Positions 3,162 to 61,962 of a DNA stretch of 64,000 bases are shown one piece after another. Source of the DNA: Oopsacas minuta (Eukaryota; Animalia; Porifera). The first letter of the stretch is position 1. Each line of letters starts with the position of its first letter. The position numbers and the translations under genes were made by a program. Location: the NCBI GenBank assembly GCA_024704765.1, contig JAKMXF010000188.1, positions 124,001 through 188,000 on the forward strand, written 5' to 3'. The notes under the pieces are model-generated. The model was not told the DNA's origin. It did no database searches and saw only the letters and a program-made list of their open reading frames with translations.

Positions 3162-3485
3162 CTGAGTAGCAGCTGACTGAATAGTAATTCCTCTCTGTCT
3201 CTCTAGCTCCATAGAGTCCATGGTAGCTCCTACATGATCCTTACCCTTAACTTCATGCATCTCGCTTATGCGTCCTGAATAGAACAATATGCGTTCACTG
3301 ACTGTAGTTTTACCGGAGTCAATATGAGCTGATATACCAATATTCCTGGTACGCTCTATCAGGTTACCATTCCCTACAAGCTCTGTCTGTTGCTTAGTAC
3401 TATACAGCTCTACCTGTCTATACAGGTGTACCCACCTGTATCTGACTATATTCACACAGCTAGGAAATGTGTGTAGACACTTCAT
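3162..3485 (-). CDS. GFM1: Mitochondrial elongation factor G1, first coding exon (rest of gene beyond window start)
   Basis: [61 protein letters not shown] matches the EF-G1mt G1/G2 region. Donor CAG|GTAATA at 3162/3161. ATG 3485 gives a presequence-like N-terminus; an alternative in-frame ATG is at 3533. No next exon found in 1-3161. Confidence 0.9.
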
Positions 3486-3684
3486 ATAATAAGCTAAGTA
3501 GGTAACACCTTGGATTAATTGTATTTGTATCATAATATGAACTAGCACACGTGTTTATTAAGCTAAAAATCACTTCAAATCTATTAGAATCTACTATCTA
3601 CATTGAATTTGGAGGTTTCTAGGTAATTAGGTTTGGTGTATTCTAACTCCAGATAGGGTAAAGAGAGAAATTAATTACCAATAA

Positions 3685-4610
3685 CACTGTTCAACAGGGC
3701 TGGCTAGTTTAAACCGGGTTAAATCACATTTAGTGGGTTAAACTGGGTTAATCCCTATTTTATGGTCCAAACTGGTTATTGCACTGTGCTAAACCTCATT
3801 TAATTGGGTAAACTACCTAAACTGTGTTTGAGACTCTAAATTGATTAAATTATAAACACAGTAAATATTCAAAGTCTTCATAAATAAAATTTGTAATCGT
3901 ACAATTGACTTAAAACCGGACGTTATTTAGTAAGAATTTTAGCATTCATTCCAAATAAATATATGTATTAAATAATACTAAAATTGAGTTTCAAAAAGGA
4001 GAAAAATTATGCTATAGTTTGATTAACCCTGGTTAAACTCCGAACCTGCTGTTTAATGCTGATTTTTCTTCTGTGTTGAATAGAGATTTATGTTATGTGT
4101 TATCAACTATGCTGATTCCGAAAATAGAGTCCGTTTTCCACCATCACGTCACAATTTGATGATATGTGACTTGGAATATTACAAAATTACTAAAACATCA
4201 GAAATTTTTTACTGAATATTGAAGTACTCAAGGGCAATCGTTCTAAATTTTCGATAAATTATATGTTCAAATTTAAATTCAAACTGGTAAGAAGTATATA
4301 TTTGGGCGAAGCTGGTCTTTTTTGGTGAGAAAATCTAGAATTTTACGAAATAGTATTAAAGTTTATTTTTGGCCTCCGAAATGATCAGTTAAACTATAAT
4401 GTATTACAAATACTCTATAGTTTGAAAATTCTTCCTTGTTGTTGATAACTCCTTTCGTATCTGGAAAAGAATTATGAAATCTTGCTAATTTCGTTGTTTT
4501 TGATGTTGGAGCAAATTGGATTCATTTTCGGAATCAACATAGAAATATTGCTAGGAAAAGTTCGAATTCAAAGAAGAAGAAATTCTAAGGTTGATTAACG
4601 TTGACCAGTG
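3685..4610. mobile_element. Non-autonomous Chapaev3-like (CMC) element carrying a nested hAT MITE
   Basis: Termini CACTG...CAGTG with TAA on both flanks (3682-3684, 4611-4613). Subterminal inverted repeat TATGCTGATTCCGAAAAT (4108-4125) pairs with 4524-4541. GCTGATTC and ATCACGTCA motifs are shared with the coding remnant at 59.8 kb. Confidence 0.6.
3695..4048. mobile_element. hAT-type MITE nested in the Chapaev3-like element
   Basis: CAGG...CCTG ends, internal GGTTAA/TTAACC repeats, and an 8-bp TSD CTGTTCAA/CTGTTTAA (7/8 match). Confidence 0.7.
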
Positions 4611-5110
4611 TAATTAGTGATAATTAACGATAATTATAAGAATACAGTAGAACTAGATTAGCACGTACTCGGCTTAAGACATACTTTCGGTTAGTAGGTA
4701 CTTTTCTCCAAAACATTCCAGACATGTTGATTCAGGTGAATTTGAGGCATTCCTCTAGTGAGTCTAGTTGTTTGGTTGGGATTTACTTTGGATTAGTGAA
4801 ATGCTATGGAATGAAATGTTGGACTTTCTTCATAATGGACAACAAATTAAAAGCAGACAGACAGATAAGCAAACAACACACACATGCAATTCAAGTTTAG
4901 TATGCAATTTCAAATCAATATTTCAAAATACCTCATTGGGTTCATATGTATTAGCATGACAAATCCTGAATCCAATCCAGACAAATTCTTAGATCATATG
5001 ATATGTAAATTATAAATCAAGCTTAAAGTCACCAGAGATAAAATGTTGATAATTTCAAATACTAATTACAATCAAATCATAAACATTGAATAAGTACAAT
5101 TAAGTTGCTG

Positions 5111-9156: not shown

Positions 9157-10527
9157 TCACACCTTGAATATCAGAGTATAATTCACAAGGAGGAAGGCTA
9201 CCAATCCCCCTATGAACGATCCTAACTGGGTACCCAGAGCAATCAAAAGTAAAAATGTAGGTCCTCCTTCCTTCTTAGCCAGAACTCCTACCCCTACCTT
9301 AAGATATCCAGCTATCAGTCCAGATAACGAGAACAGAACAATTACATGGAGCTCCCCTATCAAACTACCTTCCAACGGTTTGGGCTCAATCAATACAGAT
9401 AAGAATATCAGCCATATACAGATCAGCAGATAAGTAGCCAGCATGCACCATAGAGATAACGTTGCTCTAGGTTTGATTACACCTCCAAGGAATGATCCTA
9501 TAGGAACAGCAATCAGAGTGAGATTGATAGACAATAGAAATGTAGATGAGCCGTAAGGAATAGTAAAGTAAGGTGCAATTGAATACAGAAAGCTATTAGC
9601 AAATGCACACAGAATAACCTGAATACAAATATACTGTACTAGAGCAACATAGTTAGTCTTATACTCTCCGGGTTGTAGAACTCTCTGAGAAGGGACTAAT
9701 GTCTCAGAAGTATTTTCAGTCTCTGGAGAATTCTTAAACACAGTTATTGTTGTCATATGATTCCGCTCTCGTCTCACCAAAGGCAGGAATAGAATTAGCG
9801 TGAAGGCTATAAAACTGATTGTTGTAATGACTGTAATAACAATGAAATAGATAGTAGGGGAAAACCTCAGTCCTTTTATAGGATTCCCTGTCTGGTGACA
9901 CTCTCTAGACGCACTACCCTGTACTAACGCCCAGAGGCTAGGTAACACCCCGCTTAAACCCTCTCCTACGTATAATGCACTAATATAAGGTGTGGGATAG
10001 AGGGCTACAAATGGGAGAAACAGAACTGTACTAGTGCAGTCACACACAGCCAAACAGCCTGTTAGAATGAAGAATGGAATACTCACAGTTACGTCATCAT
10101 AGATCACAACTTCTTGTGACCAAAATATAATTATAAATATACTAGTTATGAAAGCGAAGCAGAGAATACAGTATATGACAGCTATATCTAGATAGTGTGT
10201 CTTCTTCCATATTAGTTTAACCACCGCCCAAACCAACAAGTATGCTAAAGGACCAATGTTAGCACATTGTACTATTATGACAATATAGGATGTTAGTTTG
10301 TAGCATTCTGGTAGTATAGCTGTTAGCACAGGGCTCTCAGACAAAGCTCCATTGGCTGCAGTCCACGAAACTAAGCCGAAAAGTATAAATAGAAGGTAGG
10401 CTATGAAGGATACGCTCTTTATCTGGTTACATTTTTCTTTAAATTCTGTGGATTTCTCATTAACAAAGGCTTTGAAAGAACTTGAGAATTCTTGAACTGA
10501 TGAGAATCTAGATTCTAGCATGATCAT
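9157..10527 (-). CDS. SLC52A3: SLC52-family riboflavin transporter, intronless
   Basis: Multi-TM protein with LFGLVSWTAANG..ESPVL..ILPECYKLTSYIVIIVQCANIGPL, DCTSTVLFLPF, GEGLSGVLPSLWALVQG and TQLGSFIGG, all typical of SLC52. The first ATG is 10527 (the track start is a TTG). The symbol denotes the family, not a specific paralog. Confidence 0.88.
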   Translation of the reverse strand: MIMLESRFSSVQEFSSSFKAFVNEKSTEFKEKCNQIKSVSFIAYLLFILFGLVSWTAANGALSESPVLTAILPECYKLTSYIVIIVQCANIGPLAYLLVWAVVKLIWKKTHYLDIAVIYCILCFAFITSIFIIIFWSQEVVIYDDVTVSIPFFILTGCLAVCDCTSTVLFLPFVALYPTPYISALYVGEGLSGVLPSLWALVQGSASRECHQTGNPIKGLRFSPTIYFIVITVITTISFIAFTLILFLPLVRRERNHMTTITVFKNSPETENTSETLVPSQRVLQPGEYKTNYVALVQYICIQVILCAFANSFLYSIAPYFTIPYGSSTFLLSINLTLIAVPIGSFLGGVIKPRATLSLWCMLATYLLICIWLIFLSVLIEPKPLEGSLIGELHVIVLFSLSGLIAGYLKVGVGVLAKKEGGPTFLLLIALGTQLGSFIGGLVAFLLVNYTLIFKV

Positions 10528-10747
10528 ATCTGAAATCAAATATCAGTATATTAATACAGTCCACATTCGTCATCTCGAACAGATTTCCAAGTTCGAGGTA
10601 TAGGATGTTTACTGTATTATATATTTATTAAATGAAGTGGCTATTGACCAGGGTTCCCGGGTATAATTAATCTGGTGGTTCATTATCATTATCTCATTAT
10701 TTTGTGACGTATCAGCAGGAAAATTGGTCCATTAATAAAAAGTACTA

Positions 10748-11387: not shown

Positions 11388-11903
11388 TTAATCTCGTTTG
11401 CTGATTAGTTCTAGAATAGTCTTCTTCTTCTGGGATCTTACCATTCTTTGTATAGCCCAGACACCACAGAAACACTGTGAAATAAGAAACAGCAACTCGG
11501 GTACTATTACACAAATTTCTATTGGAAGAATGAGCATATCTAGATTGAGGATCAGATATAAACAACAGATAATCTGTAGAGCTGAGAGAATACAACATCC
11601 TGTCAGATGGGGAACCAACTCTCCCAAATTCCCTCTATAGCCCAGATAGAGTCTACTGACCTCTAGCCCAAACACAAGCAGCAGTACAATTATGCTGACA
11701 AATTGATAGTAACCAGGCAATAATGGGAATTTGTTGAGATAAGCAGCAGACAATAAGAGGATGAGGAGGGGGGAGTAGAAAATATTGAAGTAGAGGGATA
11801 TCTGTAGTGGGAGATTGGACAGAGTTTCTGAGCGAGGAGAAGAGAAGTCATAACTGGAACGAATCCAGAATGAACTACTAGAGGTAACGTCTCTCATCTC
11901 CAT
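11388..11903 (-). CDS. TMEM17: Transmembrane protein 17 (ciliary transition zone)
   Basis: LSNLPLQISLYFN...LPGYYQF...EVSRLYLGYRGNLGELVPHL, 4 TM segments. First ATG at 11903. Confidence 0.92.
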   Translation of the reverse strand: MEMRDVTSSSSFWIRSSYDFSSPRSETLSNLPLQISLYFNIFYSPLLILLLSAAYLNKFPLLPGYYQFVSIIVLLLVFGLEVSRLYLGYRGNLGELVPHLTGCCILSALQIICCLYLILNLDMLILPIEICVIVPELLFLISQCFCGVWAIQRMVRSQKKKTILELISKRD

Positions 11904-12467
11904 GTATCTAACTACTAAACAAAATATACAGAATAACAAGGTTCGAGTTAAATGACTGACAATATGACATTAAATAAACTACTCACCCGTTGATCCAGTG
12001 AAAATGAATATAAATATATCTACATTATATTGTCGATGAATAGTCAAGTAATGTAGCACAAGATGTTTTCCAGTATGATTACGCTACACGATGTAAACTA
12101 GTGAATCTATATTATTAAAACGCAACCAATCTATGTGTATATACAGTACACCCTCGCTTTATGAAGAATTCCTCAAGCACTAGAAAATGTGTAAAAATCT
12201 ATCCAACTTCTATGATTCATTTAATTTTAGCGCACTAGCCTAGTTCCGGGGAGGAAACTTCCGCCATTGATATTTGTATCCACCGTTCTACCATGACGGT
12301 CGGACGGTTGTACACAAATCGCGGCCATAACAATTCGGATGACCTACCCACGGAGTACCGCGAGTGGTAATAGGTTGTGGGCCACTGGTCTAAAACACCC
12401 TATTGAACAAACAATCAGGATGTAGCCTAGCAGCCTGGACACTAACCCGAGAACGATCCCTGAGCTA

Positions 12468-13999
12468 CAGGGGCATTCAATATATACTAATCACTATATT
12501 TTTAATGAAATAGCAGTTCTAAGCTAGTATTTCTCAGTGCAATTATATAGAACCATATTTCAACTTTCTAACAAAACTTAGAGTTGATCACTTAATTATT
12601 TCCTAAGTTTCAGTTATTTTTAGAAACCTATATTTTCTCCTTTACATTTTTCATGGCTTCTTGTCCAAAATTTTCGGAACTTGAACAACGAACGTACATC
12701 AAATTTCGCACCATTCTCGAAATCCCTCCAAAGTCTATTCATGACGAGTTGGCAACGATATGTGGAGAAGATACTTTATCGTATTCAACTGTCAGAAGGT
12801 GGGTGAGCCTATTTAGGGAAGGTAGGACCTCTGTCCAAGACGCCCCTCGTCCTGGAGCACCAAAACTGGCGACCAACAATGACAAATTGAGTGAAGTAAA
12901 GGAATATGTCGCGTCTTTTCCGCATTCTTTGGTTGAGGAGGTAGCTAACTATGTTGGCATTTCAACGGGAAGTGCACACACAATTCTGAAGNNNNNNNNN
13001 NNNNNNNNNNNNNNNNNNNNNNNNNNNNNNNNNNNNNNNNNNNNNNNNNNNNNNNNNNNNNNNNNNNNNNNNNNNNNNNNNNNNNNNNNNNNNNNNNNNN
13101 NNNNNNNNNNNNNNNNNNNNNNNNNNNNNNNNNNNNNNNNNNNNNNNNNNNNNNNNNNNNNNNNNNNNNNNNNNNNNNNNNNNNNNNNNNNNNNNNNNNN
13201 NNNNNNNNNNNNNNNNNNNNNNNNNNNNNNNNNNNNNNNNNNNNNNNNNNNNNNNNNNNNNNNNNNNNNNNNNNNNNNNNNNNNNNNNNNNNNNNNNNNN
13301 NNNNNNNNNNNNNNNNNNNNNNNNNNNNNNNNNNNNNNNNNNNNNNNNNNNNNNNNNNNNNNNNNNNNNNNNNNNNNNNNNNNNNNNNNNNNNNNNNNNN
13401 NNNNNNNNNNNNNNNNNNNNNNNNNNNNNNNNNNNNNNNNNNNNNNNNNNNNNNNNNNNNNNNNNNNNNNNNNNNNNNNNNNNNNNNNNNNNNNNNNNNN
13501 NNNNNNNCTGTTCCCAAAGGTCAGACACTCACAGGACAATTTTACGCAGATGTGGTGTTGCCTGAGGTCGAAAAACATTATCTTAAGCGTCGTCCAAAGA
13601 CTGGAACTCGTGGTCTCAAAATTTTGCACGATAATGCTAGACCGCATAAATCTTTGGCTGTAAGGCAAAAAATTAAAGATATGGGTATGCACGAAGTTCC
13701 ACATCCACCTTACTCCCCTGATATAGCCCCATGTGACTTCTGGCTGTTTAGAAAACTCAAAGATAACCTCTCCGGACGCGAATTTGAGGATCGGCTCAGC
13801 CTCGGTCGGGCAATTTACAGATACCTTGAAGTCATTCCCAAGGATGAGTACAGAAAGACATTTGAAAATTGGATTAAAAGGCTAAATTCAGTTGTAGCGT
13901 ATAAAGGAGACTACTTTGATCATTCATAGCAAAATTACCAACTTTACACAAGTATCTATAGTTTTAGATGGTATGATTAGTATTTATTGAATGCCCCTG
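12468..13999 (+). mobile_element. Mariner (DD34D) transposon; transposase 12653-13929 interrupted by an assembly gap
   Basis: 26-bp TIRs CAGGGGCATTCAATA(T/A)ATACTAATCA (1 mismatch) with TA flanks at 12466-7 and 14000-1. N-terminal HTH (EQRTYIKF...VRRWVSLFREGRTSVQDAPRPGAP). C-terminal HDNARPH...YSPDIAPCDFWLF, D34D spacing. Confidence 0.95.
12992..13507. other. Assembly gap (516 N)
   Basis: Run of N. The X-containing ORFs in the track are artefacts of it. Confidence 1.
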
Positions 14000-14298: not shown

Positions 14299-14979
14299 TC
14301 AGTGATCGGTTGCCTGTGTTAAAAAGGTGAAACTATCAGACGACTTACAAGAAGCCTGGCTAGAAGGACGGCTAGAACCTTTCCTTCTACGACCTAGTTC
14401 TTTCTGAAGCTGGAGTCTGTCCATGAAGAATACTTTCTGCCACCCGACTTCAGGCTGACTAGCAAATTCCTTCACCTCCAGAGAGGCAGCCCCTAGATGC
14501 TTGAGGTATATCTGCTCCCACATCTCCTCACAGAGACATAACTTCCTAAGAGCACGACAGACCTGAGACAAGTAGAACACTTCTTTCAGACTCAGACAGG
14601 ATATAGTACTGATTAATGCTCGTGTAGGCATCTTCAGTAGCCAAGTATCACCTATAGCACAGGCAATACGACGTGCTGTGAGAGAACCAAACACAGATAA
14701 AACATTAGTCTGTATGTTAGCATTATCTAGATACTCTTCTCTAAAGAGTAGTGTCTCAGAGGGTGCAGCAGCTTGTGGTAGAGTCAGATTACGAGGACTT
14801 ATAGCCCATTTCCTCCATATAACACCCTCTGTGGTAGCCTTCAAGTAGCAAAAGTCTTTCAGAGGCGGTCTCTCCTGTGCACTCATCTCTAGCAGTAGTT
14901 CTCCTGCTTCTATATGTCTCCGTTTCTTAGCATTCTCAGATGCACAACTATTCAGTTTTAAACTATCACATGATGACAT
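14299..14979 (-). CDS. FBXO36: F-box only protein 36
   Basis: LLEMSAQERPPLKDFCYL...VIWRKWAISPR, F-box (LLKMPTRALISTISCLSLKEVFYLSQVC...EEMWEQI) and GWQKVFFMDRLQLQKELGRRR. First ATG at 14979. Confidence 0.88.
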   Translation of the reverse strand: MSSCDSLKLNSCASENAKKRRHIEAGELLLEMSAQERPPLKDFCYLKATTEGVIWRKWAISPRNLTLPQAAAPSETLLFREEYLDNANIQTNVLSVFGSLTARRIACAIGDTWLLKMPTRALISTISCLSLKEVFYLSQVCRALRKLCLCEEMWEQIYLKHLGAASLEVKEFASQPEVGWQKVFFMDRLQLQKELGRRRKGSSRPSSQASCKSSDSFTFLTQATDH

Positions 14980-15359
14980 GTGAGCTAGATAATAATGCAA
15001 ATAAATAATATCAGTACACCTGAAGATTCATATAGTAAATATATGTGGCTATAATTATTAAATGCATAGGCTTGGAATCTCGACCAAGGAATTTCTAGTA
15101 GCGCACATATACAGTAAAACCCCCAATTAGGGAACATTTTGGGACTACTGAATAGTGATCCTAATATGGAGGTGCTCCTTGACAAGAGGTTTGCCTTTTA
15201 GAACTTTATGAGGTGTATGAATATTTGTTTGTAAACATGTGCAAGATGGACTACTGTAAGAACGTCGATCAAATAATCTAATTTAATGTATTTTATTAAC
15301 CAGTTTAGGTATAACACACGTCATTGAGTAGTACGTATGTAGGTACACGTTTAACGAAT

Positions 15360-16502: not shown

Positions 16503-17267
16503 TTATTTGTAATCTATTAAGTACAGTCTACGTGAGAGCAATAGTCCTATGAAGAAAAGTAGAAGATAGATTGTCCATAGATATTGTTTGGATTTCTGTT
16601 GGAAGATTTGTTGTCTCAACTCCTGAGCAGGGTCATTAAGTTCTTCTCCCAGACTGATAGCATCTTGAGGAGGTTCTTGTCTCTGTTTCTTAGCGACAGG
16701 AGCTTCAGGCTTGATGACAAGCCTCTTTACTACATCACTTGCCTCCTCTAACAACTCCTGTATCTCTCCCGGGACTTCTTCCACTTCAGGTAAGAGCTCT
16801 AAGTTAGTTTTCTTACAGTCTCTACATTTGTATGTAGAAGATCTGACGGCTAGCTTAGCTCGCTCTGAGCTAGTACAGTCTAGGGAACCTATTGCCCCCT
16901 CTCCATGCATTGGCATGTACGCAATAATAGCCATTAAGACGGTTCGGATGCTCCAGGAGGGCTCCCAGCTCTCAGGATGAAAGTTCGATATGCTGAGACA
17001 GAGTTTATTGTTTACAGAAAATCTTCCATTCTCCGTTAGCATAATAATACTAGGAGGTTTCATCGGGTATTCTGGTGGGAACACAATCCTACCATGATAC
17101 CTCCCACCTTCAAATGCAGTATCTGAGGGACCTTTCACTGTAAAATGCCACTCGAATAAGTTTTCTTCTAACGGCTGAGTGAAAAAGTGAGCAGTTGGTT
17201 TATTTAATTCTTTTGCTTCTTTCATTAGCCTCTTCACAGCTGGAGAACGTATAGCCATCCGAGACAT
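16503..17267 (-). CDS. UBE2J1: Ubiquitin-conjugating enzyme E2 J1 (Ubc6e), tail-anchored
   Basis: SPAVKRLMKEA...ENLFEWHFT...YHGRIVFPPEYPMKPP...NGRF...LCLSISNFHPESWEPSWSIRT, followed by a C-terminal TM helix. Confidence 0.96.
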   Translation of the reverse strand: MSRMAIRSPAVKRLMKEAKELNKPTAHFFTQPLEENLFEWHFTVKGPSDTAFEGGRYHGRIVFPPEYPMKPPSIIMLTENGRFSVNNKLCLSISNFHPESWEPSWSIRTVLMAIIAYMPMHGEGAIGSLDCTSSERAKLAVRSSTYKCRDCKKTNLELLPEVEEVPGEIQELLEEASDVVKRLVIKPEAPVAKKQRQEPPQDAISLGEELNDPAQELRQQIFQQKSKQYLWTIYLLLFFIGLLLSRRLYLIDYK

Positions 17268-18334: not shown

Positions 18335-18365
18335 AAGTAGCTCGAGCAAACGAAGCGCACTAGTA
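18335..18365 (+). mobile_element. Helitron-like 3' end motif (GC-rich ...CGAAGC...CTAG/CTTG); similar motifs at ~205-242, ~26276-26316 and ~48368-48401
   Basis: A recurrent GC-rich, hairpin-capable motif ending in CTAG or CTTG in an AT-rich background. The Helitron assignment is inference. Confidence 0.4.
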
Positions 18366-18494: not shown

Positions 18495-20020
18495 CTAAGA
18501 AGTAACCGAGACTACAGGTTCATAATCATCAAAACGATTCTCGAGATAATTACTGTTCGGGCTTGAAACGTTTGTTCCCCTTTTGGGATTGAATCCCATA
18601 AAAGAAAACTTCTGCCATGTTTGATCTAAAAGGACATAAATATCAACTTCTAACCAGATAGCTGCACAAAATAATTCTACGTCGCTGCCCCATACTCTTA
18701 ACATTGATATTTTCCTCTCAAAATGTATTCGTCTATATCTTGATTATGTTTCATCATTGCATATTTTACATAACGAGGCAGTACTCATAAACGTGATTAA
18801 TTTGCTTCTAATTTGTCCATGCATGTTTTCATCTCCTGTTATCCACCAACTTAGAGCCCTGAGGAGGCAGTTTCCATCAGGAATAATTAAAATCTTTTCA
18901 CTTACTATACAACTTTCTAATCAATGTTTTCCTTTAGTTGAATCTTTGAACGAACTTTTAGGAATTTTTGCTAAGTAATTCAAAATTTTCCCGCATTAAC
19001 CTATTCTCCACTCTTTGTTAACAGCCAAAAAATACAACTTTGATTTCTTTATCCCTCTTTTGGTTTGTATATGAGAATCTTGATCAATTAGTATCGTAAA
19101 ATCTTCATTTACATTTATATTATCATCAGATCTCATTTTATTTTATTTGTTCAATGAGCTATCGCCTTTTCGGTAGTAGATTGATTTTAATGGAATAGAA
19201 ATGAAAATATTATCGGTATGAAACTCTGAAAATAATGGATGTTTATTTGGTTGAGTGTAAGTGATATCGGAATTTGAATCAGATATCTCGTCATATTTGT
19301 CCAATTGATCTTGGATACGCTTGCCTACAAGATTTTCTTTGAACATCACAATTAACACGAATAGCAGAATCAGAAAATTTTCCTATTGACTGATGCTTAT
19401 TAAACTGATATTTCAAATGCTGAAAGCAACAGTCGTGTGTATAGTGCTCTAAAAAAATGCATTTTTGGCATAGATGAATAGTAGATGGAGCCAATGTTTG
19501 TAGGATTTTACAGAAATATTGTCCCAATTCGCCTTGCATTCTCTCATGGACCATATCTGCAATATACCAATATATGCTTTGAATCCTCGTTGAGCCATAT
19601 ACTTAAGTTTATTTTCATACGATTGTGAAGACCTATCTATGTGAATTTGAAATGAGTTTGTACAAAAATCTGGAAACAGCTCATCTAAAGCTTCAAAAAG
19701 TAATTCTTGGTAAAAATTCAATTCGCTACCACCATGATCTCTTCTAAATACTGAAATTACTTTTGTCTTCCATACAAAATTCTTGCGATAATTTTTTGAT
19801 CATTCGTCTAGTATTACACCATTCTTCTGCAGTAAACTGTTCAAATTCGCACATTAGCCTATTATATCCGTTCTATCGAATTGTTGAGAAAAAACTGTTG
19901 AGTTTTTTTCTAAATTTGGGACAAAAATTGATTATTCCAGAATATTTGTTACAGAATTCCCCTCTGATAGAGGTAAATTTCAATGGTGTGAGACATAATT
20001 TCCTCTAAAGCATGCCCCAT
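18495..20020 (-). pseudogene. Decayed ORF with a C-terminal OTU-like cysteine protease domain (probably transposon-derived)
   Basis: In one frame: IIPDGNCLLRALSWWITGDENMHGQIRSKL (Cys motif 18852-18881), a TAA at 18746-18744, then WGSDVELFCAAIWLEVDIYV...YLENRFDDYEPV. Upstream fragments (19143-19721) are protein-like but broken. Confidence 0.75.
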
Positions 20021-26049: not shown

Positions 26050-26344
26050 AACTATTTTAATAGTGGACAGTAACTGTGGTAACATATGGAAATTTATTGA
26101 ACTGAAATAGTTGATGTATATGAAATTATTTGTAATTTTTATCCAGAATTATAATTAAGATACCTTCAATAATATCTATTAAATATATATAACATTTACG
26201 GCCCAAAAGCACTGACAAATGTAACTCATATATACTTATGCTAAAACAAGGGACCAAGCTCAAGGATACTTCCGCCCGTCGCGGAGCGACCTAACAAGCG
26301 AAGCACGCTAGCATAAATATATACATCTATCAAATGAATAATTC

Positions 26345-39940: not shown

Positions 39941-41956
39941 TTAATGCTCTTTATTTTTAACCAGAGACACACTGTCTTCATTGGCTGAGTAATGAACTAT
40001 ATGATCCATGGTATCATCCACAGCATAGTCCTGAGTCTGAGTAAGGCCGAGTTTATAAGAAATACGCATTATTCTCCTTCTAACCGAGAATAATGAGTTC
40101 TTAATCATATGCCATAACTCCTTGTATTCGTACAGCATACCTAACGGAACAGGAATGATGGTACTCAATATGATAAATACTATTACAGCGAGTGACCAGA
40201 TTGGGTAATGCACTTGTACTTGCGTATAATTCTGGAATGCAGTATACTTAGGTCTTCCAGTCAACTGGTATATTAAACTGCCTGAGAATATGACTATCAT
40301 AACGAGAGGAGCTACTATTATCCAACTGATAGACCAGAAATACAGTGTAAATCCTTTAAACCATTTATTAGACCGTATTCTAGCTAGTCTGCTAGTAGCA
40401 GCCGTCACTATGATCTCACCCGTCTGATACCAGAGTATTTTATTGACTCCGAAGAACCAAGCAACCCCGATAAACTCAAAAAATATAACAACAAACAGAG
40501 AGTAGGAAGCAGCAAATTCATCTATCAACCCGAATATATACTGACCATTACCCAGCACGAAGATGACGCTACACACAGTGAATATACTACAGATAATGAA
40601 TGAGATTATTGTTTCGTGTACTTTTGACATGTAAGGCAAGGAACGAGCTGCTTCCGTCAGAGATTGTATTGACGGGAATTGAGAACTGAGTCCAAGAGAT
40701 AGCATCATCAAGAAGAATAGGACACTCCAAAGAGGAGCAGGAGGAGTATCCAGCAGAGCAGATGCTACAGCTATAAATACAAGTCCAGGACCTGCTACTA
40801 TATCTTGTACGCTCTCCCCTCTGAGGTGTGCGTTATGTCCGAGTATCATAAACACTACTATCCCAGAGAATATGGAAGTACCAGAGTTTACTAATGACAC
40901 GAATATAACGCTAGGAAATACATTAGTTTTCTGATCTAGATGAGAAGCCAGCACAATATTACCACCAGTACCTAAACTGAGACTGAAGAATATTTGAGAA
41001 CCTGCCTGTAGCCACACTTTAAAGTTTAATAGCAGCTTAAGGTTAGGATAGAATAGAGCCTTCAGGCCCTCCCCTGCTCCTTCAAATGTTGCTCCTCTAA
41101 TAAGCAATACAGTTAGCACTATATATGGGAATATAGTTGTGACGTAAGCAATCTTACCAAAGCTCTTTATACCTTTGAAAGTGCATAAGAATATAAGTAA
41201 CCATGCTCCGATGATACATAGCATTAGTTTCCAAGAGAAACCAGTAGTATCCTCTATGGTAGAGGTTACACCAGCAACAGAGCTATAATAGAAGAGAGTA
41301 GGAGCAGACTTATTGCATGCCTGTCTGAGAAGAGAATCATTAATCCTGGATATATTCCCGCAGTAAGCAAGAGATGACCAGGCTGGAGGATTTTGAAAGG
41401 AGCTGAATAGATAAAATAGAACATAAGCTATTAGCAGACTGTAGTTAAATGTTATGTATATCATAGTGACGATAGCCGCGAGTCCTACCCCACAGAATGG
41501 AGGCACGAGACGGTGCATAGCATTAAGAGGTCCTACCTGCGAAATTTTACCAATATGCACCTCTAGATAGAAGGCAGGTACACCCAGTATAAATAGCATC
41601 AAGAAGTAAGGAATGAGAAAAGCACCACCGCCATTCAATTGTACATAGTAAGAAAATCTCCATACATTACCGAACCCTACAGCATAGCCTACAAGAGATA
41701 AGATATACTCTGCTCTGCTACTCCATCTCTCCTTCTTAGGGCGAGCAGTTAGCTGTCCTGATTTAAGATATCTATAAGAATTTTCATACGACTCATCGCT
41801 TACATTACTCTTAATACCTCCCTTGCTGCGCATAGATACACTGAGTGTATTGCTTTTATCGTTATATTGGTGATGTGGTGATAATGATGAGGTTATCAGA
41901 TGGGAACGAATGTCGTCATGGTTAGGGCTGATATTCTCAGGTTTTTCAGGATCCAT
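39941..41956 (-). CDS. SLC6/NSS Na+-dependent transporter, probably nutrient amino-acid type, intronless, 671 aa
   Basis: RWSSRAEYILSLVGYAVGFGNVWRFSY..QLNGGGAFLIPY; QIFFSL; VNSGTSIFSG; GPGLVF; LGLSSQF; 12 TM segments. Confidence 0.95.
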   Translation of the reverse strand: MDPEKPENISPNHDDIRSHLITSSLSPHHQYNDKSNTLSVSMRSKGGIKSNVSDESYENSYRYLKSGQLTARPKKERWSSRAEYILSLVGYAVGFGNVWRFSYYVQLNGGGAFLIPYFLMLFILGVPAFYLEVHIGKISQVGPLNAMHRLVPPFCGVGLAAIVTMIYITFNYSLLIAYVLFYLFSSFQNPPAWSSLAYCGNISRINDSLLRQACNKSAPTLFYYSSVAGVTSTIEDTTGFSWKLMLCIIGAWLLIFLCTFKGIKSFGKIAYVTTIFPYIVLTVLLIRGATFEGAGEGLKALFYPNLKLLLNFKVWLQAGSQIFFSLSLGTGGNIVLASHLDQKTNVFPSVIFVSLVNSGTSIFSGIVVFMILGHNAHLRGESVQDIVAGPGLVFIAVASALLDTPPAPLWSVLFFLMMLSLGLSSQFPSIQSLTEAARSLPYMSKVHETIISFIICSIFTVCSVIFVLGNGQYIFGLIDEFAASYSLFVVIFFEFIGVAWFFGVNKILWYQTGEIIVTAATSRLARIRSNKWFKGFTLYFWSISWIIVAPLVMIVIFSGSLIYQLTGRPKYTAFQNYTQVQVHYPIWSLAVIVFIILSTIIPVPLGMLYEYKELWHMIKNSLFSVRRRIMRISYKLGLTQTQDYAVDDTMDHIVHYSANEDSVSLVKNKEH

Positions 41957-43083: not shown

Positions 43084-43408
43084 TTACTTCTGAATTTGAT
43101 CTAATGATTTGACAATATCTGCAGCAGTTGGTCTCAAATTTGGGTCATCAAAAATACAGCTAACATATATAGACTTTATATTCTCAGGACACCAATACGG
43201 CATAGAGAGGTATCCTGTCTTTGGGATTTTCCCAGTTAGTATTTCCCATAAAATTATGCCAAACGACCAAATATCAATTTTTTCAGTCGCTCTGTGTCTG
43301 TACACAACTTCAGGAGCTGCCCATGCTAGAGTGTAAGAGCTCTGAGCAGTCATATTGTCTTGTGTCATCAAACGAGCTATACCTACATCTCCGATCTTAG
43401 CGATGTAC
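43084..43408 (-). CDS. TKL-group protein kinase, last exon (subdomains VII-XI)
   Basis: Acceptor CAG| at 43409 (phase 2). YIAKIGDVGIARL...TLAWAAPEV...DIWSFGIILWEI...RPTA. Confidence 0.9.
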
Positions 43409-44031
43409 CTGTGTGTATATATTGTAAATAATCAGATATGCTAGAAGAGAGGGTGGATAATAAGAATTGATTACAATCATTTACTTAAACGATCTGAAAT
43501 ACATATAATTACGACTATGCATGAATCCACTCATATGAATATGTCCCATTAATGAAATATTAAGATAGCTGTGTTTGTAATTAGGAGATAATTGAAAGAA
43601 GACATTGAATTGTGTATAACTCAATCCACGTACCTTAGCTCAGTACTAAATTGGAACTAGATCTCTAGAAGCATATGGAGGCTGTTACGATTGACAATCA
43701 ACTCGTGCCTATTCTAACTCATACGATACATCAACTAGCCCCTAGTTAACTCAACTTTGAGGTGGCGTAAAATCTTCTGATCAACAGCTGGAGGCGTGTG
43801 CATAACTAGTACAAAAATCTGATCCACAAAGCAATAAGAAACACTCTAAGACAGCATCGAAGGGGCGTAAAAATAGGTACGAGTTGACAAGAACTGAAGA
43901 CGACTTGTGCCAAAATATGGACGAGTTGTCTGGCCTCTGTAAACAATGTAATCATGTAAGACTCCTAGTGCTTCGGGGGTATTTCAATGTATAATAATGC
44001 TATTAGACCTTATAACTTGCTCCATTAACTA

Positions 44032-44202
44032 CAGTAGAACTCGGCTAAGTTAGTAAGTACTCAGCTTAAGAAGTACTTTTCTGTAATACGGATATCTATT
44101 TTGTACTAATTGTATACGAATTAAGAATATTCAGATATTACGTAATTGGATTAGTACATTGTACTAGCTTTTGTTCCAGTGCGTTTTATCCGAGTTCTAC
44201 TG
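44032..44202. mobile_element. Tigger/pogo-type MITE in a kinase intron
   Basis: TIR CAGTAGAACTCGG(C/A)TAA with TA flanks. Confidence 0.8.
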
Positions 44203-44496
44203 TAATAAGCTTCATTGTGTACCAGTAGACTATGGCGAGAGAACAGATAATTCTACTACTAGACTACAACAACCGGCAATCATCCAACTAATGCAATACT
44301 ATATAAGTATTAAAGCTCAATAATATTGCAGTAAAGACAAATAAAACGATTGATCTTAATCTCTCCCATCGCGTACCATGAACAATTTGTAATAAGACTA
44401 TACACGACCATTGATTATATTCAAATTCCGAGAACCCACTCGTAATACTAATCAAGTAATAGGACATAATACAATATACGTAGCACCTGATCTAAC

Positions 44497-44852
44497 CTGT
44501 GAAGCATTACATTTGAACTCTTCAGGTCTCGATGCACTACAGTAGGATCTCTCTTATGAAGATAATTCATACCTAACGCTATGTCTCTAGCAATAGACAA
44601 GCCGTACTCCCCGCTCCACTGCATCTTAGGGTCATTCTTAAGTCCAGTGAATAAGTCTACGTCCATTAACTCAGTCACCATGTATATATTATTAGGAAGT
44701 AAACAAGCACCGTAGAACTGTAGTATGTTACGGTGATGTAGTTTGCTAATTAGCTCTATCTCCTGAGCAAAAGGTTTCAGTGACTCTTTGCTTGATATCT
44801 TGCATATCTTAACAGCAACATCATCTACTTCATACATAAGTCCCCTGTATAC
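44497..44852 (-). CDS. TKL-group protein kinase, middle exon (subdomains I-VIb)
   Basis: Acceptor CTAG| at 44853 (phase 0). VYRG..VAVK..FAQEIELISKLHHRNILQFYGAC..MVTELM..HRDLKSSNV. Donor AG|GTTAGA at 44496 (phase 2) matches the next exon. Confidence 0.9.
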
Positions 44853-44929
44853 CTAGCAAGAGAGTAAGGTAGACATGAGTCCTTAACTTCGAAAACGTAG
44901 ATATATATCTATATCGAGTAGTTATTCTC

Positions 44930-45280
44930 AGGATCCTAGGGTCTTGATAGAAAATGCCAAAACCCTAGGGTCCAAGCTCAGAATTTTATCCTAGGACCCT
45001 AAGGTCCTAGTCCAAATATTCGCTCTAGGACCTATATTTGCTAATGCAAATTTAACTTTATATCTCAACTATTAAACACGCAATTTGTTTTTTCTCTATA
45101 ATCCAATCAAACACCACACCAGTTATCCAATAGTGTACTGAAATGCTCATATCCTGTGCTAATGTAAAGAAAGAAACTAATCAAAATACAAATTCACTAA
45201 ACTGATATAATAAGTTTTAAAAATACACTAAATATAGGGTCCTAGAGCGAAATTATACTCTAGGGCCCTAGGGTCTTAGA
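44930..45280. mobile_element. MITE rich in CTAGGAC/GTCCTAG motifs in a kinase intron
   Basis: Inverted repeat TTCGCTCTAGGACCTATATTT (45019-45039) / AAATATAGGGTCCTAGAGCGAA (45230-45251). Boundaries approximate. Confidence 0.5.
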
Positions 45281-45603
45281 TATATTTTCCTATATATACC
45301 TACTACGTATATGCTAATAATATATGATATTACTGCAAGGTTTGATACGGTCTATCTAAGTGAATAGACGCCAGAGAGTTTATACAATGTCTACAATTAG
45401 AAAAGTACTCAATACAACAAAAAAAGCACAGTAATTGTGTTGATGGCAAAGATAATAACCAAAAAGAGTTTATACAGGTATATACCTAGCGAGCTAACTT
45501 AGTAGAATGTTAAATAAACAAACATATTAAATAGAGATGATGTATGATGTAACATTATTTATCTGTCAATGAATATTATTATTATTACAGTCTCAAGTCT
45601 TAC

Positions 45604-46113
45604 CTCACAATATCCACCCATCCCTAGTCTCCATTGTTTACCATCTTGAGTCTTACAAATGGCCAGACAGTCTGGATTAATCTCCCAGTCATTTTTCCTC
45701 TCGCCGTTCATTTTACTGCTGTTAGTTGGGACTGCGAAATTGTTCGAGAGGGAGGAAGAAGGTGTGGGGGAGGGAGAGGGGTATGATTGGCCGTTAAAAA
45801 CTTTGTGTTTAAGAGGTTTGGAGACGGAACGAACAGCTGGAGTATTATGTGCTCCGTTCATACGTGGAATTGCAAATAAAGGAGCCGGGGGTACTCTAAA
45901 AGGTCCATCATTTACTTCTATTCCAAACTTTGGCAGATTTATATTATTGCCTATATCTGTCTCCTCCGGAATAGAGGGCAGTAGTATCGGGTTCTTAGGA
46001 GCTAGAGGCGCTACATCAATATCTATAGGCTGAGATCCATTTGAGCCAATAGTAGAGCTGGTACTAATATCACTGTCCTGACTCTCTAGAGATGATCTCG
46101 CTCTATAATTCAT
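45604..46113 (-). CDS. TKL-group protein kinase, 5' exon (Ser/Pro-rich region plus Gly loop)
   Basis: ...NDWEINPDCLAICKTQDGKQWRLGMGGYCE| with donor GTAAGA at 45603 (phase 0). The three exons total 396 aa from ATG 46113. The 5' end is uncertain because of a possible acceptor at 46103. Confidence 0.85.
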
Positions 46114-49448: not shown

Positions 49449-50890
49449 ATTAGGGAGTAAGACATTAGTTCATAGGGTACATGCTATACGTATCATATTT
49501 GAATCCTCTGATAAGGATCAACCACAATCCCACTTAATATAGATACACGATCGGTGATAGTAAGCTTATTTCCTTAGAAATACATATAATTCCAGATTAA
49601 GTAGTATACAGAATAAAATACTATATTTGATGGAATAATAGCTCGTAGAACTATTCAGTATATTAGGCTTCTATTACATCTTATGGGATATTGACCTTAT
49701 CTTGATCACATAAATTGACGGATTAGGTACAAACTTTCCTAGGAATCCTGACAGATAGATTGCCATACTATACTATGCTATGTGATCATATATCAATACA
49801 AGTTAGATTAGTACAGGTAAGTACAGTATGATCCGCTTCTTTATAGGGACATCGGGCAATCGGGTCAGTTGAGCAGAACAAACTATGCAAGTAGATAGGA
49901 CCAACACCTATATTCAAGTTAATCGGGAAAATGGTATGATTCTGAAGTAACCTAGCGCTGACGGAAACTATGTGTATTCAGAGGATACCATGATCAATGT
50001 GTGGTAACCTTTGGTGGAATTTTTAAAAGGGATAGAGTCACACTAGAATTGTCACCTATATATATAGCCTGATAAAATTATCAGATATATCAACCTGGAC
50101 ATCTTACGAGACAAGACTGTAAAGTGCTTCGTTGGGTAGCCTGATTGACAGGTGTAACTGTAGCTACAAGTATGAGATATTGGTATGACAGGATAGTGTA
50201 GAACTGAAGAGATAATAATTCGAGAATAATATAGTTATGAATTATATGTATCCATTACCTTGCAAAGTAATTCTTTAATGATTAGCGTGAAAAACTTGAT
50301 TAGTAAGAATATAACAAATAAACTATTTATTCACATTATTATATATAATCAAGAGAACATGGACATGACGTCATATGAACAGCCTATTAGCATAATAGCA
50401 TAACAACATAATGTAACATAGTTATGTCCTATCGAGTGACGATATGGCTCGAGTATATAACTAATATTAAGATTGATACGATACGTAGTAGTATAAGATC
50501 TGGACAGTAAACAACATTATTATCTTACTGAACTTTAGACTAGGCAGGGTAACTGAGAATGTAGGATATGAATATTATGTCCAACTAATTCATACCTTCA
50601 GTCCTGCTTTGTTCTTCACTCAGGTTGGTAAGTATGGAATAAATGCGTCTGAACACAAGTTTCAAAGGCAGTTAAATATCTCATAGATAGGTACCTATGC
50701 GGCATCATTGGACCATGGGAGCCGGATTAGTACCGCTTCAGATGGTTTAACTTTATTATAATATATTTACTATTTATGAGCATTAATTTTGCTAATATAG
50801 ATGCAGATGGAGGTAGGAGAGTGTTCCTGCTAATCAATATAATTAATACACGTGCATAATGATATTTAAGGTAATGTATAATGAAATCAC

Positions 50891-51327
50891 CTCTTAGAAC
50901 GTTCAGAGTTTCGTCTGAGAGAAGTAGTAGGCTCTTGAACTGTTCCGTTTGAAGTAGTGATGACGCCAAGAGAAGACAAGCCACCACTAGCATGTCTCTT
51001 CAGTTTCTTAGAGTATGAGTGAGAGGTTTTGGTAGGAGAATCATTGCGTATAATGTCAGAGGATGACCGCTTCAGATTCGGTCTCTTACCCGATATAATA
51101 GGAGGAGATTTGGGAGGTGATTGTCTGTGATTGTCTGTACGTGGGTTATGCGGAGAAGGAGATTTCTTCAGTGGGTACTGCTTGGTTGGTTTGGTTGCCC
51201 CCCTCTTATTACACAGGTTTATGTATAAATGGCGTGTAGAGTCATTAATCGGGCCGTGATCAATCCCGGCCTCTTTGAGGCGAGATTTCAACTCATCATC
51301 ACTAACTTTACTATCAATCATGGACAT
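50891..51327 (-). CDS. LEM-domain protein, first exon (downstream exons unresolved)
   Basis: VSDDELKSRLKEAGIDHGPINDSTRHLY is a LEM motif, followed by Ser/Pro/Lys-rich low complexity. Probable donor AG|GTGATT at 50890; otherwise the stop is at 50887. Confidence 0.75.
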
Positions 51328-52320: not shown

Positions 52321-53611
52321 CTATAGCACACGTCTGTTCCCAGTCTGGAATGCAGCCTTTCCCCCTTTCCTAGGATCACTAGCCCCCCACACTTCACCCC
52401 TGTTAGTCAGGATAGAATCCACTGTACTCTCAGCATCTCCAAAAATAATATTATCCATACGAGAGTATATGCTACGTAGTATATCGACAGCTAGTTCAGG
52501 GAAACCTGTCTCAAAGTTGAGTATCTGTGGGATTAGCTGATTATGTAGACGCTTAGCTTTGACAGCTTCATCAGGATACATACCAAACGATAGAGTATTG
52601 AGTAGAGCCTGTACTACAGCAGTAATAATATGAGACCCTCCGGATCCGCCTGACACAGCGTGTACGACATACTCCCTCCCCGTTGTACCCTTGTCTAGTA
52701 CAATGACTGGAGACATCGAGGACTGAGCTTGTTTAGTTGGAGCAATGAAGTTATGTGGACTAGGGGGCAGATTGAAGAAGTTATTAGTGTTTGGAGTAGA
52801 GAAGTCATCCATATCGTCATTAAGTATTATCCCGTATGTAGGCGTTATGAGAGCAGAACCGAAGTACAGATTAACACTAGTAGTGATAGACACAGCCATA
52901 CCATTAGAATCTAATACTGAAATGTGTGTAGTACCGTGATTGCTAGGTGATTGCTTAACATCTCCATAATGACTAACATTATACGTACTGTCTGTTATCT
53001 TAGCTAGTATTGCTCTACCTGTGTCCTCTTCCATTAGGTCGGCTACTAACTTAGTTAGATTCACATCGTGTACAAATAGAGGGTCACCGAATTGCATTCT
53101 CTCTGCATATGTGTACTTGAATGCTTCTATTATTCTGTGATAATCCCATCCTGTGGGGGTGGAGTTGAACAGCTGGTTGTTGAGTATGTTGAAACAGTAG
53201 AGAACTGCAGGACCTCCGGATGGTAGAGGGTGAGAAATCACCTTGTAACCCTTGTAATGAGTACTGATAACTGAACTAACAGATGTAGAATAACCTCCTA
53301 AGTCCTGCTTACTGATATTACCATTGTGTGCATTAACATAGCTAATTATCTCTTCAGCTATTGGTCCTGTATAAAATCCAGCAGATCCTTCTGTCTGTAT
53401 TATCCTGAGAGCTTTGGCAAGAGAGGGACGCTTCAGGATATCTCCTGCCTGTAACGGAGTGCCATCATCAGAACAGAATTCCTTTAGAAACACTGAATTA
53501 AATTCTAGTTCAGATTTACGATCCTTCAGGGCAGCTGCTAGATACGGTGATACTATTGTACCGTTCTCAGCTGCTGTGATTACTGGTTGGAATAGTTCAC
53601 TCCATGATAAT
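52321..53611 (-). CDS. GGT1: Gamma-glutamyltranspeptidase, exon 2
   Basis: Acceptor CAG| at 53612 (phase 2). LSWSELFQP, HRIIEAFKY, catalytic Thr in NHGTTHISVLD, ILNDDMDDFS, QSSMSP, GGSGGSHI, ASDPRKGG. The symbol denotes the family. Confidence 0.95.
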
Positions 53612-55243
53612 CTGTAGAGTAGATGCAAGCAGGATTGTATGGAAATAAATATTGGTTCAAAGGAAAATTTTAGTGTTCGTTTTCATTACGACAGGAAAAC
53701 TCCAACCGTAATCAGTTAATGGAGAAATGATGAATGGAAAAAATTATGGAAAAAATTATGGAATCTCATTCACTGACAAGTAACAAAACTTAATATTTGC
53801 TTAACTTTGTATGTCAGTGAATTTCAATGAACTTAGATCCTCTAATGAATTCAATTACATCAAATTGTATCCATGAGAAGTTTAGACTTCTTTGATAAAA
53901 GTTCCTTAAGGATATCGTCAAGGTTGCAACAGGAGAGTTCAATAGGGCTCAACCGAAGTATATTAGGCGAATAGTTCACCAATCAAATATCAGTATTCGG
54001 TATTCGGTTGTCTAATACCGAATATTATCAGTATTTAAGGTTAGGTTGCCATTCATGATACGATAGGTACGTTACTGTATTCAGTTCCAGCGGTTTCAAC
54101 CTTGGTTATGGTGTAATATAACTGAACCATGACGTCATCACACTTAACCTGTTCGTTCAATATTTCTGGAGTTAAATATATTACGTGATTTATCATAAAT
54201 TCCCTCCATTTAACTACCCAGCCTGGAATCATAGATAGTCTTTAGTAAAATCGCTAAGTATTATGCAAAATAAAGTTAATTAAGTACATTTTAACTTTTG
54301 TTAGTGAATAAGCCCGATAATCCACCCCCCTATGTCACGGTGTAGAATCTATAAATTTGGGTGACGCAAGGTAAATCCGCTCATATGTCGTCAGACTGAC
54401 TTCCCTAATTCACGGAACGGAACGAACAAGTTTTCTTGAAGAAATTTCAAATTTGTTTAGTGGTTGCACATTTGGCCTTGTAATCACATAATGTAATATT
54501 GTATCATGACGGTTGTCAAGCATTTGTTATAACTTTCACGTTGGTGATAATCAATTTTCTAAAATGTGTAACGAAATCTATAATATCTATTAATACCTCA
54601 TGATAGAGGCGGCTGGGTCTTCAAAATGGACAACGAACATCCAAAGTTTGAAGGGTCCCAGGGCCAGGAACGGATGCAAGGAGTGCACAGGGGTAGAGTT
54701 ATAAAAAAATACAATCTAAAATTCGTCCCGCTTTTTCCATAGTCCAGTCTAATGTAAATATGCTACGTCCCGCGATGTTCCGCTAAATTTGTACCCTCTG
54801 TCTCGCCATTTCTTTACTCAGTTGGCAAGTATGTAAATTGTAGATACGTGTCGTACTTCCGAAATACTCTATATGCAAATAATACTCAATGAAATTAAAG
54901 TGAATTGAAGCAATTCGCGTAAATTCCTATAATATGGAAGTGTGATTTGACAAATTTGGCGTGTCGAAATTTAGAGTAAATATATTTATGAGAATGGTGG
55001 AAATATTATCGATAACCATCGACGTGAAATGTCATAACAAATGCTTGACAAGTGTTATTCTATACTATTCTGTGATTTTCAAGGTTAATTATGTGTCAAG
55101 TGACAAATTTGAAATTTCTTCAGGTAATTGTCAGGTCTGTTCAGTGAATCAGGGAAGCCCTATATTTCACTCTCCTCTGCTTCATAACAATTACCTGCCT
55201 ACTGAGAATTCTTAAGAGAAATTGAAATTTGTTACAAACTCAC

Positions 55244-55776
55244 TTGCCATATTTGTTGTGTGCTGCTTCCATTCCGCTAATCTCTCCAGGTATAGCTACA
55301 GAGAGTCCTCCCTTCTGAGAGGCATCTGGCTTCCCAACAAACATGTTCTCACTGGCAGTGAGCGGTGCTTTCTCCCTGAAATTAAATGACGTCATATCAT
55401 CTGCATTCTTGAATACAACCATAAACCCTCCTCCTCCTATACCACTGTACATAGGACTATACAACCCCATACATAGCATTGTAACTATAGCAGCATCCAC
55501 TCCAGACCCTCCCTTCTTCAGGATAGAAACTCCCATCTCAGAACAGTCATATACATCACTCACAACTGTTCCTGTGTGTATCAGCTGAAAGTTGAGAACT
55601 ATTATGTTTACGATCATACTGATTGTCAGGGCAACAGAAAACACTACGAATGCGAGTGTTATAAAGAACAGACCATCGATATGTTTTCGCAGAGATTTTG
55701 GGAGGAAATTAGTGTAGTGACGAAACAACTTAGTGCCTTGCTGTCCACCTTCAAGCTTATAATACTTGTCACTCAT
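55244..55776 (-). CDS. GGT1: Gamma-glutamyltranspeptidase, exon 1 (type II signal anchor)
   Basis: TM helix, then CSEMGVSILKKGGSGVDAAI..SGIGGGGF..FREKAP..GGLSVAIPGE..AHNKYG. Donor AA|GTGAGT at 55243 (phase 2); spliced total 607 aa. Confidence 0.95.
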
Positions 55777-61930: not shown

Positions 61931-61962
61931 TTCATATATTGTGTAATCTCTTGTTTACTGTC

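Follow-up and report, generated by a model that had tools for sequence, protein, structure and literature searches.

A strong bias of neighbouring genes towards the same strand is textbook knowledge for the kinetoplastids, in which almost no adjacencies switch strand, and operons occur in only a few groups of animals; those of nematodes and tunicates comprise 2-8 genes and have spacers of about 100 nt or less. For sponges, we found no paper on gene co-orientation or operons. Spliced-leader trans-splicing has been published for glass sponges (PMC10282587, PMC7986045), and the leader of Aphrocallistes vastus was reported from cDNA reads only, with no mention of gene orientation or operons (PMC10282587). 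According to a survey from 2021, operons have not been reported in hexactinellids (PMC7986045), and gene orientation is not mentioned in either glass-sponge genome paper (PMC10280926, PMC10282587). Here we describe a stretch of 64,000 nt from the glass sponge Oopsacas minuta (contig JAKMXF010000188.1, abbreviated C188; positions C188:124001-188000, referred to as the window) in which 18 host genes, from GFM1 to GGT, are all located on the minus strand over 53 kb, and we compare this run with the systems named above.

The assembly of O. minuta comprises 61.46 Mb in 365 contigs, and the genome has been described with 16,413 genes, 1.59 introns per gene and a mean intergenic distance of 2 kb (PMC10280926). 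Coding open reading frames (ORFs) were mapped by length and codon score over C188:1-258000, i.e. the window plus 194 kb outside of it, and all strand statistics are based on this part of a single contig. Gene identities were obtained from Pfam scans, with the spliced genes (GFM1, GGT, the kinase and the coiled-coil gene) scanned exon by exon, and 8 of 10 single-ORF proteins of the window are letter-identical to proteins annotated at NCBI. As relatives we used large contigs from sponge-holobiont assemblies in ENA that match MINDY, ATG10 and TTLL9 at 55-92% identity; their loci carry L numbers below, and positions without a prefix are those of the window.

Strand bias within and beyond the run

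In the order of transcription, the run starts with GGT, the LEM gene, the kinase, SLC6, the DsbA-like gene, the ZFYVE19-like gene, the RPP38-like gene, the coiled-coil gene with a nested TRAF-like gene, and ATG10, and it continues with the CMTR-like gene, MINDY, the UBE2J-like gene, the F-box gene, TMEM17, SLC52, MIOS and GFM1. As evidenced by the Pfam scans, the initial annotation was correct both in placing 18 host genes on the minus strand over ~53 kb and in describing them as functionally unrelated. It had further pointed to plus-strand host genes in the gaps, for example at 46-51 kb, as an observation that would speak against the run. Codon scoring of all ORFs, translation of the gaps and Pfam scans yielded no such gene inside the run, and neither did a repeat search of the 46-51 kb region. 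The latter is a gene-poor gap of 4.6 kb that separates the LEM gene from the kinase. A ~385-bp interspersed repeat occurs there twice, in inverted orientation (of 1,656 first-look candidates in the genome, at least 40 copies were scored, at 86-91% identity), and the rest of the gap is non-coding. The plus-strand items within the run are a mariner copy and, near 38.2 kb, the decayed remnant of a mariner helix-turn-helix; the mobile elements as a group sit on both strands, with a mariner (-) in a GFM1 intron, the mariner (+), a hAT element (-) and the mariner remnant (+).

A chance of 2^-17, or 1 in 131,000, had been calculated for such a run from independent orientation of its genes. This null is the wrong one, because independent orientation is violated everywhere the genome was sampled, and strand switches are rare in the flanking 194 kb as well. 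The 94 coding ORFs of C188:1-258000 form 15 runs, with seven large blocks of alternating strand and four singletons; blocks of 5-25 genes (8-85 kb) alternate along the contig, and neighbours are co-oriented about four times out of five. Outside the window we counted 11 strand switches in 66 ORF adjacencies, equivalent to ~40-50 gene adjacencies (P between 3e-3 and 2e-8 against a switch rate of 0.5), which rejects random orientation and bears out the earlier view that the run exceeds what independent orientation would give. Over the entire 258 kb the switch rate is 0.15-0.24 per adjacency, and single opposite-strand host genes do occur inside blocks. With this rate and 16,413 genes, a first-order Markov model predicts 39-154 runs of at least 18 genes, compared to 0.06 for random orientation. 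Long runs are thus to be expected in this genome. As the same-strand bias is found outside the window, the run appears to be a property of the genome and not of this locus; it is neither due to chance nor special to this place.

On its left side the run is bounded by a plus-strand His_Phos_1 gene (C188:118567-119604), a lone plus-strand gene between two minus blocks that lies ~200 bp from the stop codon of GFM1 in convergent orientation. The start of the run had been placed at 3162, a position that falls inside GFM1, as this gene extends past the start of the window to C188:119808. On the right side, a divergent strand-switch region separates GGT from TTLL9 and the next plus block. Neither an Rfam family nor a tRNA gene was found in the switch regions. 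The coordinates of all features are collected in the table.

Table. Genes, mobile elements and spacers of the run and its borders (window positions unless prefixed with C188).
Feature	Position	Strand	Evidence or content
GFM1 (mitochondrial EF-G)	1..3548, first coding exon 3135-3548	-	Pfam GTP_EFTU
GFM1, later exons	C188:119808-122786, left of window	-	Pfam EFG_III/IV/C, GTP_EFTU_D2
Mariner copy in GFM1 intron	995-2193	-	Pfam DDE_3, HTH_48
MIOS, single ORF of 898 aa	5111..7807	-	Pfam MIOS_a-sol, MIOS_WD40, zinc_ribbon_16; exact NCBI protein
SLC52 riboflavin transporter	9157..10539	-	Pfam SLC52_ribofla_tr, E 1e-82
TMEM17	11388..11939	-	Pfam Transmemb_17
Young mariner transposon holding N run 12992-13507	12596..13929	+	Pfam HTH_32/HTH_48 left, DDE_3 right
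F-box gene (FBXO36-like)	14299..15000	-	Pfam F-box-like; tblastn 74-77% identity to L026, L035
UBE2J-like ubiquitin-conjugating enzyme	16503..17267	-	Pfam UQ_con; exact NCBI protein
Decayed ORFs between MINDY and UBE2J	18498..19799	-	Translations; weak Pfam OTU and zinc-knuckle
MINDY deubiquitinase	20332..21624	-	Pfam MINDY_DUB, E 3e-88
CMTR-like cap methyltransferase	23155..26085	-	Pfam FtsJ + G-patch + FtsJ
Tightest spacer, ATG10>CMTR, 259 nt	26086..26344	-	Includes copy of 17-nt repeat word, 26295-26311
ATG10	26345..26923	-	Pfam Autophagy_act_C; exact NCBI protein
Coiled-coil gene, two exons: 30778-31164; ~28354 down to 28157	28157..31164	-	
TRAF-like gene, complete, nested in coiled-coil intron	28890-29942	-	Pfam MATH_2, TRAF-mep_MATH
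hAT-family transposase ORFs	31778..33489	-	Pfam DUF659, Dimer_Tnp_hAT
RPP38-like (L7Ae fold)	34322..34897	-	Weak Pfam L7Ae; 58% identity L026/L035; exact NCBI protein
ZFYVE19-like	35307..36479	-	Weak Pfam FYVE; 72% identity L026/L035
DsbA-like thioredoxin-fold gene	37313..37978	-	Pfam Thioredoxin_4, DSBA
SLC6 sodium:neurotransmitter symporter	39941..41956	-	Pfam SNF, E 3e-126
Protein kinase; domain exons 44448-44837, 43087-43431	43087..46113	-	Pfam Pkinase halves, codon score
Inverted pair of ~385-bp interspersed repeat	46715-47097, 47938-48240	.	Own-genome DNA search
LEM-domain gene, first exon	50887..51327	-	Pfam LEM
Gamma-glutamyltranspeptidase (GGT), two coding ORFs, first gene of minus block	52321..55812	-	Pfam G_glu_transpept on both
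Divergent strand-switch region GGT/TTLL9, 2.1 kb	55813..57936	.	ORF map
Next plus block: TTLL9, zinc-finger-like ORFs, GT25 glycosyltransferase	57937..63851	+	Pfam

For three of these features the assignment needs comment. The gene initially labelled CMTR2 is indeed cap-methyltransferase-like, with FtsJ and G-patch domains, but it can be assigned as CMTR-like only, being either CMTR1 or CMTR2; its domain order of FtsJ, G-patch and a second FtsJ stretch is unusual and recurs in the orthologue of L034. The ORF at 45559-46113 may be the 5' part of the kinase gene or a separate gene, and the decayed OTU and zinc-knuckle ORFs at 18498-19799 are probably the remains of a dead mobile element.

The run also contains an assembly gap, a series of N inside the young mariner on the plus strand. 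Each of its flanks (432 bases on the left, 433 on the right) has at least 40 matches elsewhere in the genome at 94-100% identity, and at least seven complete mariner copies carry both pieces in collinear order on one strand, with 311-313 bp between them. As the flanks are collinear in complete copies, the gap lies within one mariner and hides no host gene; it is probably a collapsed repeat with a true length of ~313 bp, not 516. A false join between two different mariner copies is nevertheless conceivable, and it would split the run into 4 + 14 genes.

Rearrangement of the run among related glass sponges

The comparison with relatives separates an older part of the run from younger ones. Both in L026 and in L035 the genes on one strand follow the order Aldolase_II > ZFYVE19 > FBXO36 > RPP38 > coiled-coil exon 1 > TRAF > exon 2 > ATG10; opposite-strand IBR genes come after ATG10 in both loci, and in L035 the core is interrupted additionally by an opposite-strand HlyIII gene. 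The conserved core thus contains ZFYVE19, RPP38, the coiled-coil gene with its nested TRAF-like gene, and ATG10, and the 18-gene run is a mosaic, because this core of about seven genes is joined to relocated ones. On the evidence of the orthologous loci, the run is not an ancient unit: the newcomers CMTR, MINDY, FBXO36 and the DsbA-like gene are located elsewhere in related sponges. A distance of 10 kb separates ATG10 from the CMTR-like gene in L034, where IBR, phosphatase (PTP) and Ig genes on the opposite strand lie between the two, and the PTP orthologue of O. minuta (72% identity) is found on another contig. The neighbours of MINDY in three relatives include an NHL gene, and in L024 it is flanked by orthologues from two O. 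minuta plus-strand blocks that are 70 and 55 kb away.

The two tightest pairs of the run fare no better. The ATG10>CMTR adjacency is absent from L026, L035, L036 and L034 and is specific to O. minuta, and between ZFYVE19 and RPP38 the FBXO36 gene intervenes in L026 and L035. The order of the core from ZFYVE19 to ATG10 is therefore kept in relatives, but a conservation of pairs in the style of operons is not seen for the tight ones. The hAT insertion, which splits the run, is recent: it is missing from the orthologous spacer of L026, which measures 1.1 kb, and the genes downstream of it in O. minuta are without visible damage. At the right border, the TTLL9>GT25 adjacency is kept in L029, and the divergent GGT/TTLL9 boundary is missing in another relative. 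In two more distant, glass-sponge-like loci (L027:1122-18693 and L028:634-12037) ATG10 is located inside an array of 7-10 tandem caspase-like (Peptidase_C14) genes, and O. minuta has no caspase-like array beside ATG10.

Every new junction of O. minuta is co-oriented, which amounts to about four independent orientation choices. That relocated genes are found in the orientation of their new neighbours suggests selection on orientation and not on particular pairs; with about four choices this is suggestive only. The adoption of the neighbours' orientation by moving genes is a testable point that emerges from the comparison.

Spacers, start-codon signals and the nested gene

The spacers between consecutive coding regions range from 259 to 3064 nt with a median of ~1.06 kb. 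Only two of the 18 are shorter than 500 nt, ATG10>CMTR with 259 nt and ZFYVE19>RPP38 with 409 nt, and the remaining 16 exceed this length; an intercistronic distance of the operon type, about 100 nt or less, is not reached even by the smallest. In the ATG10>CMTR spacer the sole AATAAA is placed after the acceptor-like TTTCAG of CMTR, and neither AATAAA nor ATTAAA occurs between the stop codon of ATG10 and this acceptor.

The start codons are preceded by a signal that resembles a splice acceptor. Within 12 nt or less before the first ATG, a YAG is present at 72% of the 58 gene starts on the contig, with values of 41% for YAA and 24% for YGA. Counted by position, 62 YAG fall into the last 20 nt, about twice the ~30 counted in each 20-nt bin at greater distance from the ATG; the excess remains when in-frame positions, where a stop codon bounding the ORF is possible, are left out. 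The controls YAA, YGA, RAG and the reverse complement showed no enrichment before start codons. With a stricter definition, a pyrimidine tract plus YAG, 20 of 72 starts were scored, compared to ~7 per equal window further upstream. In the run itself, 13 of 17 host genes have a YAG in the 12 nt before the ATG, and MINDY and SLC6 are among those without it. Acceptor-like sites are present at the orthologous starts of L026 as well. Few non-coding blocks are common to L026 and L035, and they include the 18-28 nt that precede the ATG of TRAF and of ATG10. The enrichment of YAG agrees with spliced-leader trans-splicing as published for glass sponges, and ordinary introns in 5' untranslated regions (UTRs) would look alike. 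An apparent enrichment of the branch-point-like TACTAA was rejected, as it shows no positional preference.

Upstream of five orthologous genes, no non-coding blocks conserved between O. minuta and its relatives were found. A GC-box/ETS promoter in the ATG10>CMTR spacer was considered and rejected, since the conserved core of this GC-rich stretch is a repeat word. The word, CTAGCGYGCTTCGCTTG, has a length of 17 nt and is present in 129 genome copies at one mismatch or less, with 0 copies of the reversed word; a TATA-like stretch lies before it, and variable, GC-rich and hairpin-like sequence comes after it. Copies are located at 26295-26311 (-) and 18347-18363 (-) in the window, at C188:19885-19901 (+), and at L034:18842-18858, and the three copies on C188 all match the direction of the local gene block. 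A copy precedes the CMTR-like gene in both cases, at a distance of 210 nt in O. minuta and 1.8 kb in the relative L034. Candidate identities are a small repeat, a small RNA gene and a regulatory word.

The TRAF-like gene deserves separate consideration. It lies inside a same-strand intron of the coiled-coil gene in three glass-sponge assemblies, with the order kept in L026 and L035, and has an acceptor-like YAG 8 nt before its ATG. The donor of the first coiled-coil exon overlaps the stop codon and reads CTCAG|GTGAAT in O. minuta and CTCAA|GTGAGT in two relatives. In the ORF at 28157-28381 a strong acceptor is followed by a frame that runs into conserved coiled-coil sequence, and with the exons examined separately the reading frame is kept across the junction, both in O. 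minuta and in L026. Because the TRAF-like gene is located inside a conserved same-strand intron, it is likely transcribed together with its host at least sometimes, and it is a possibility that its mRNA is cut from the host pre-mRNA.

Explanations of the run and relation to known systems

We consider it moderately probable that the run is a local instance of a same-strand habit of the whole O. minuta genome, in which genes have their own promoters, transcripts are spliced at the YAG and orientation is kept by selection. Most genes would then be expressed from promoters of their own within the spacers of ~1 kb, and the 5' ends of the mRNAs would be made by splicing at the YAG a few bases before the ATG, most likely by spliced-leader trans-splicing. 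In a compact genome, read-through from a neighbour on the same strand would be harmless, as its upstream part would be spliced off, and selection may keep co-orientation for this reason, whereas head-on or antisense transcription would be harmful. Genes would truly be co-transcribed at single places only, with the nested TRAF-like gene as the likely case and ATG10>CMTR as a possible one.

A number of points weigh against this reading. The claim for the whole genome is based on 258 kb of one contig, and the loci examined in the relatives are less uniform, with 13 switches among 54 ORF adjacencies, or among 37 when the tandem caspase arrays are left out, so that the bias may be stronger in O. 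minuta than in its class. The case for own promoters draws on spacer size and rearrangement history only; the GC/CpG profile upstream of the 58 starts is flat, with no promoter signal, and none of the 6-8-mers shared upstream of starts survives multiple testing. Moreover, the spacers in kinetoplastid polycistrons are also 0.5-1.5 kb long, and spacer length alone thus provides no exclusion. Look-ups of ATG10 (exact) and of ten window proteins (cluster) returned the genome contig only and no RNA contigs. The Logan contigs matching TTLL9 are genomic DNA of a relative, in which neither poly(A) nor a leader is present.

The initial annotation had inferred one or a few polycistronic units. In its kinetoplastid-like form, this explanation would have RNA polymerase II start at the divergent switch region near 56-58 kb and proceed through all 18 genes, with mRNAs cut out by spliced-leader trans-splicing coupled to polyadenylation. 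It would account for long co-oriented blocks that alternate at switch regions mostly larger than the spacers within blocks, for the acceptor-like YAG before most start codons, for the failure to find a promoter motif or CpG peak upstream of genes and for the missing poly(A) hexamer between ATG10 and the CMTR acceptor. It is further in line with an excess of T over A on the sense strand of non-coding DNA inside blocks (2.8%, z = -8.3), but this is weak evidence, as introns and UTRs can explain it. On the other hand, opposite-strand host genes such as His_Phos_1 are embedded between minus-strand genes, the mid-run hAT element carries five poly(A)-like hexamers while the genes downstream of it are intact and conserved, junctions vary freely between species, and the predicted leader was found on only ~4% of long cDNA reads of Aphrocallistes vastus (PMC10282587). 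With long spacers, derived junctions, a tolerated transposon and embedded opposite-strand genes, a polycistron is unsupported for the run as a whole, and we regard it as unlikely; on a local scale it may apply to the nested gene and, less probably, to the pair ATG10>CMTR. The broader proposition that glass-sponge genomes consist of kinetoplastid-like directional clusters, with transcription starting mainly at divergent switches and resolved by a leader, appears distinctly unlikely; if true, animals would have their first example of such a system.

Small operons in the style of nematodes and tunicates, restricted to ATG10>CMTR, ZFYVE19>RPP38 and the nested TRAF-like gene, with their transcripts resolved by a spliced leader and the remainder as separate genes, are a doubtful alternative. 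Spacer sizes, the stretch free of poly(A) hexamers from the ATG10 stop to the CMTR acceptor, and the TRAF-like gene in its conserved same-strand intron with a YAG close to the ATG are what such operons would predict, but the ATG10>CMTR pair is derived, with opposite-strand IBR, PTP and Ig genes at its place in relatives, FBXO36 stands between ZFYVE19 and RPP38 there, spacers of 259 and 409 nt exceed those of typical operons, and nested genes elsewhere mostly keep their own promoters. A layout linked to replication, in which the blocks would be replicons with origins at divergent switches and genes co-directional with the forks to avoid head-on collisions, would suit the alternation of blocks with divergent regions of 2-10 kb between them; however, non-coding DNA of the blocks has no GC skew (z = -0.6), single genes on the opposite strand interrupt the blocks of 8-85 kb, and no evidence of origins was obtained, so that we see this as highly improbable. 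Hardly credible, finally, is a chance fluke or a false join at the N gap. The gap does lie in a repeat with at least 40 copies, a typical place for scaffolder errors, but its flanks fit one element in correct order and orientation, a split at the gap would still leave 14 genes on one strand, strand switching in the flanks is far below 0.5, and the seven-gene core is co-oriented in independent assemblies of relatives.

If the preferred reading of a genome-wide bias holds, the run bears on how transcriptional read-through is dealt with in the compact genome of an early-branching animal, and the tolerance of read-through would be tied to spliced-leader trans-splicing. Among known systems, the gene clusters of kinetoplastids (Trypanosoma, Leishmania) likewise consist of tens of unrelated genes on one strand, in blocks that alternate at divergent and convergent switch regions and have spacers of kilobase order, and they too belong to a lineage with spliced-leader trans-splicing, as do the glass sponges. 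The blocks of O. minuta are shorter, however, at 5-25 genes, and single host genes on the opposite strand break them up; about one fifth of the adjacencies switch strand, and a related sponge seems to use its leader only in part (PMC10282587). The operons of nematodes (C. elegans) and tunicates (Oikopleura, Ciona) resemble the run in being animal systems of co-oriented, unrelated neighbours with an acceptor right before the downstream ATG, but 16 of 18 spacers in O. minuta are longer than 500 nt and its tightest pair is not conserved in related sponges. In A. vastus 12.4% of genes are nested (PMC10282587), and the TRAF-like gene of O. minuta is likewise intronic, here on the same strand as its host and with an acceptor right before the ATG. 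With respect to the trans-splicing of hexactinellids, for which a leader of ~37 nt is described in A. vastus, the enrichment of YAG at ~12 nt or less from the ATG is the trace that the addition of such a leader at these sites would be expected to leave in the genome.

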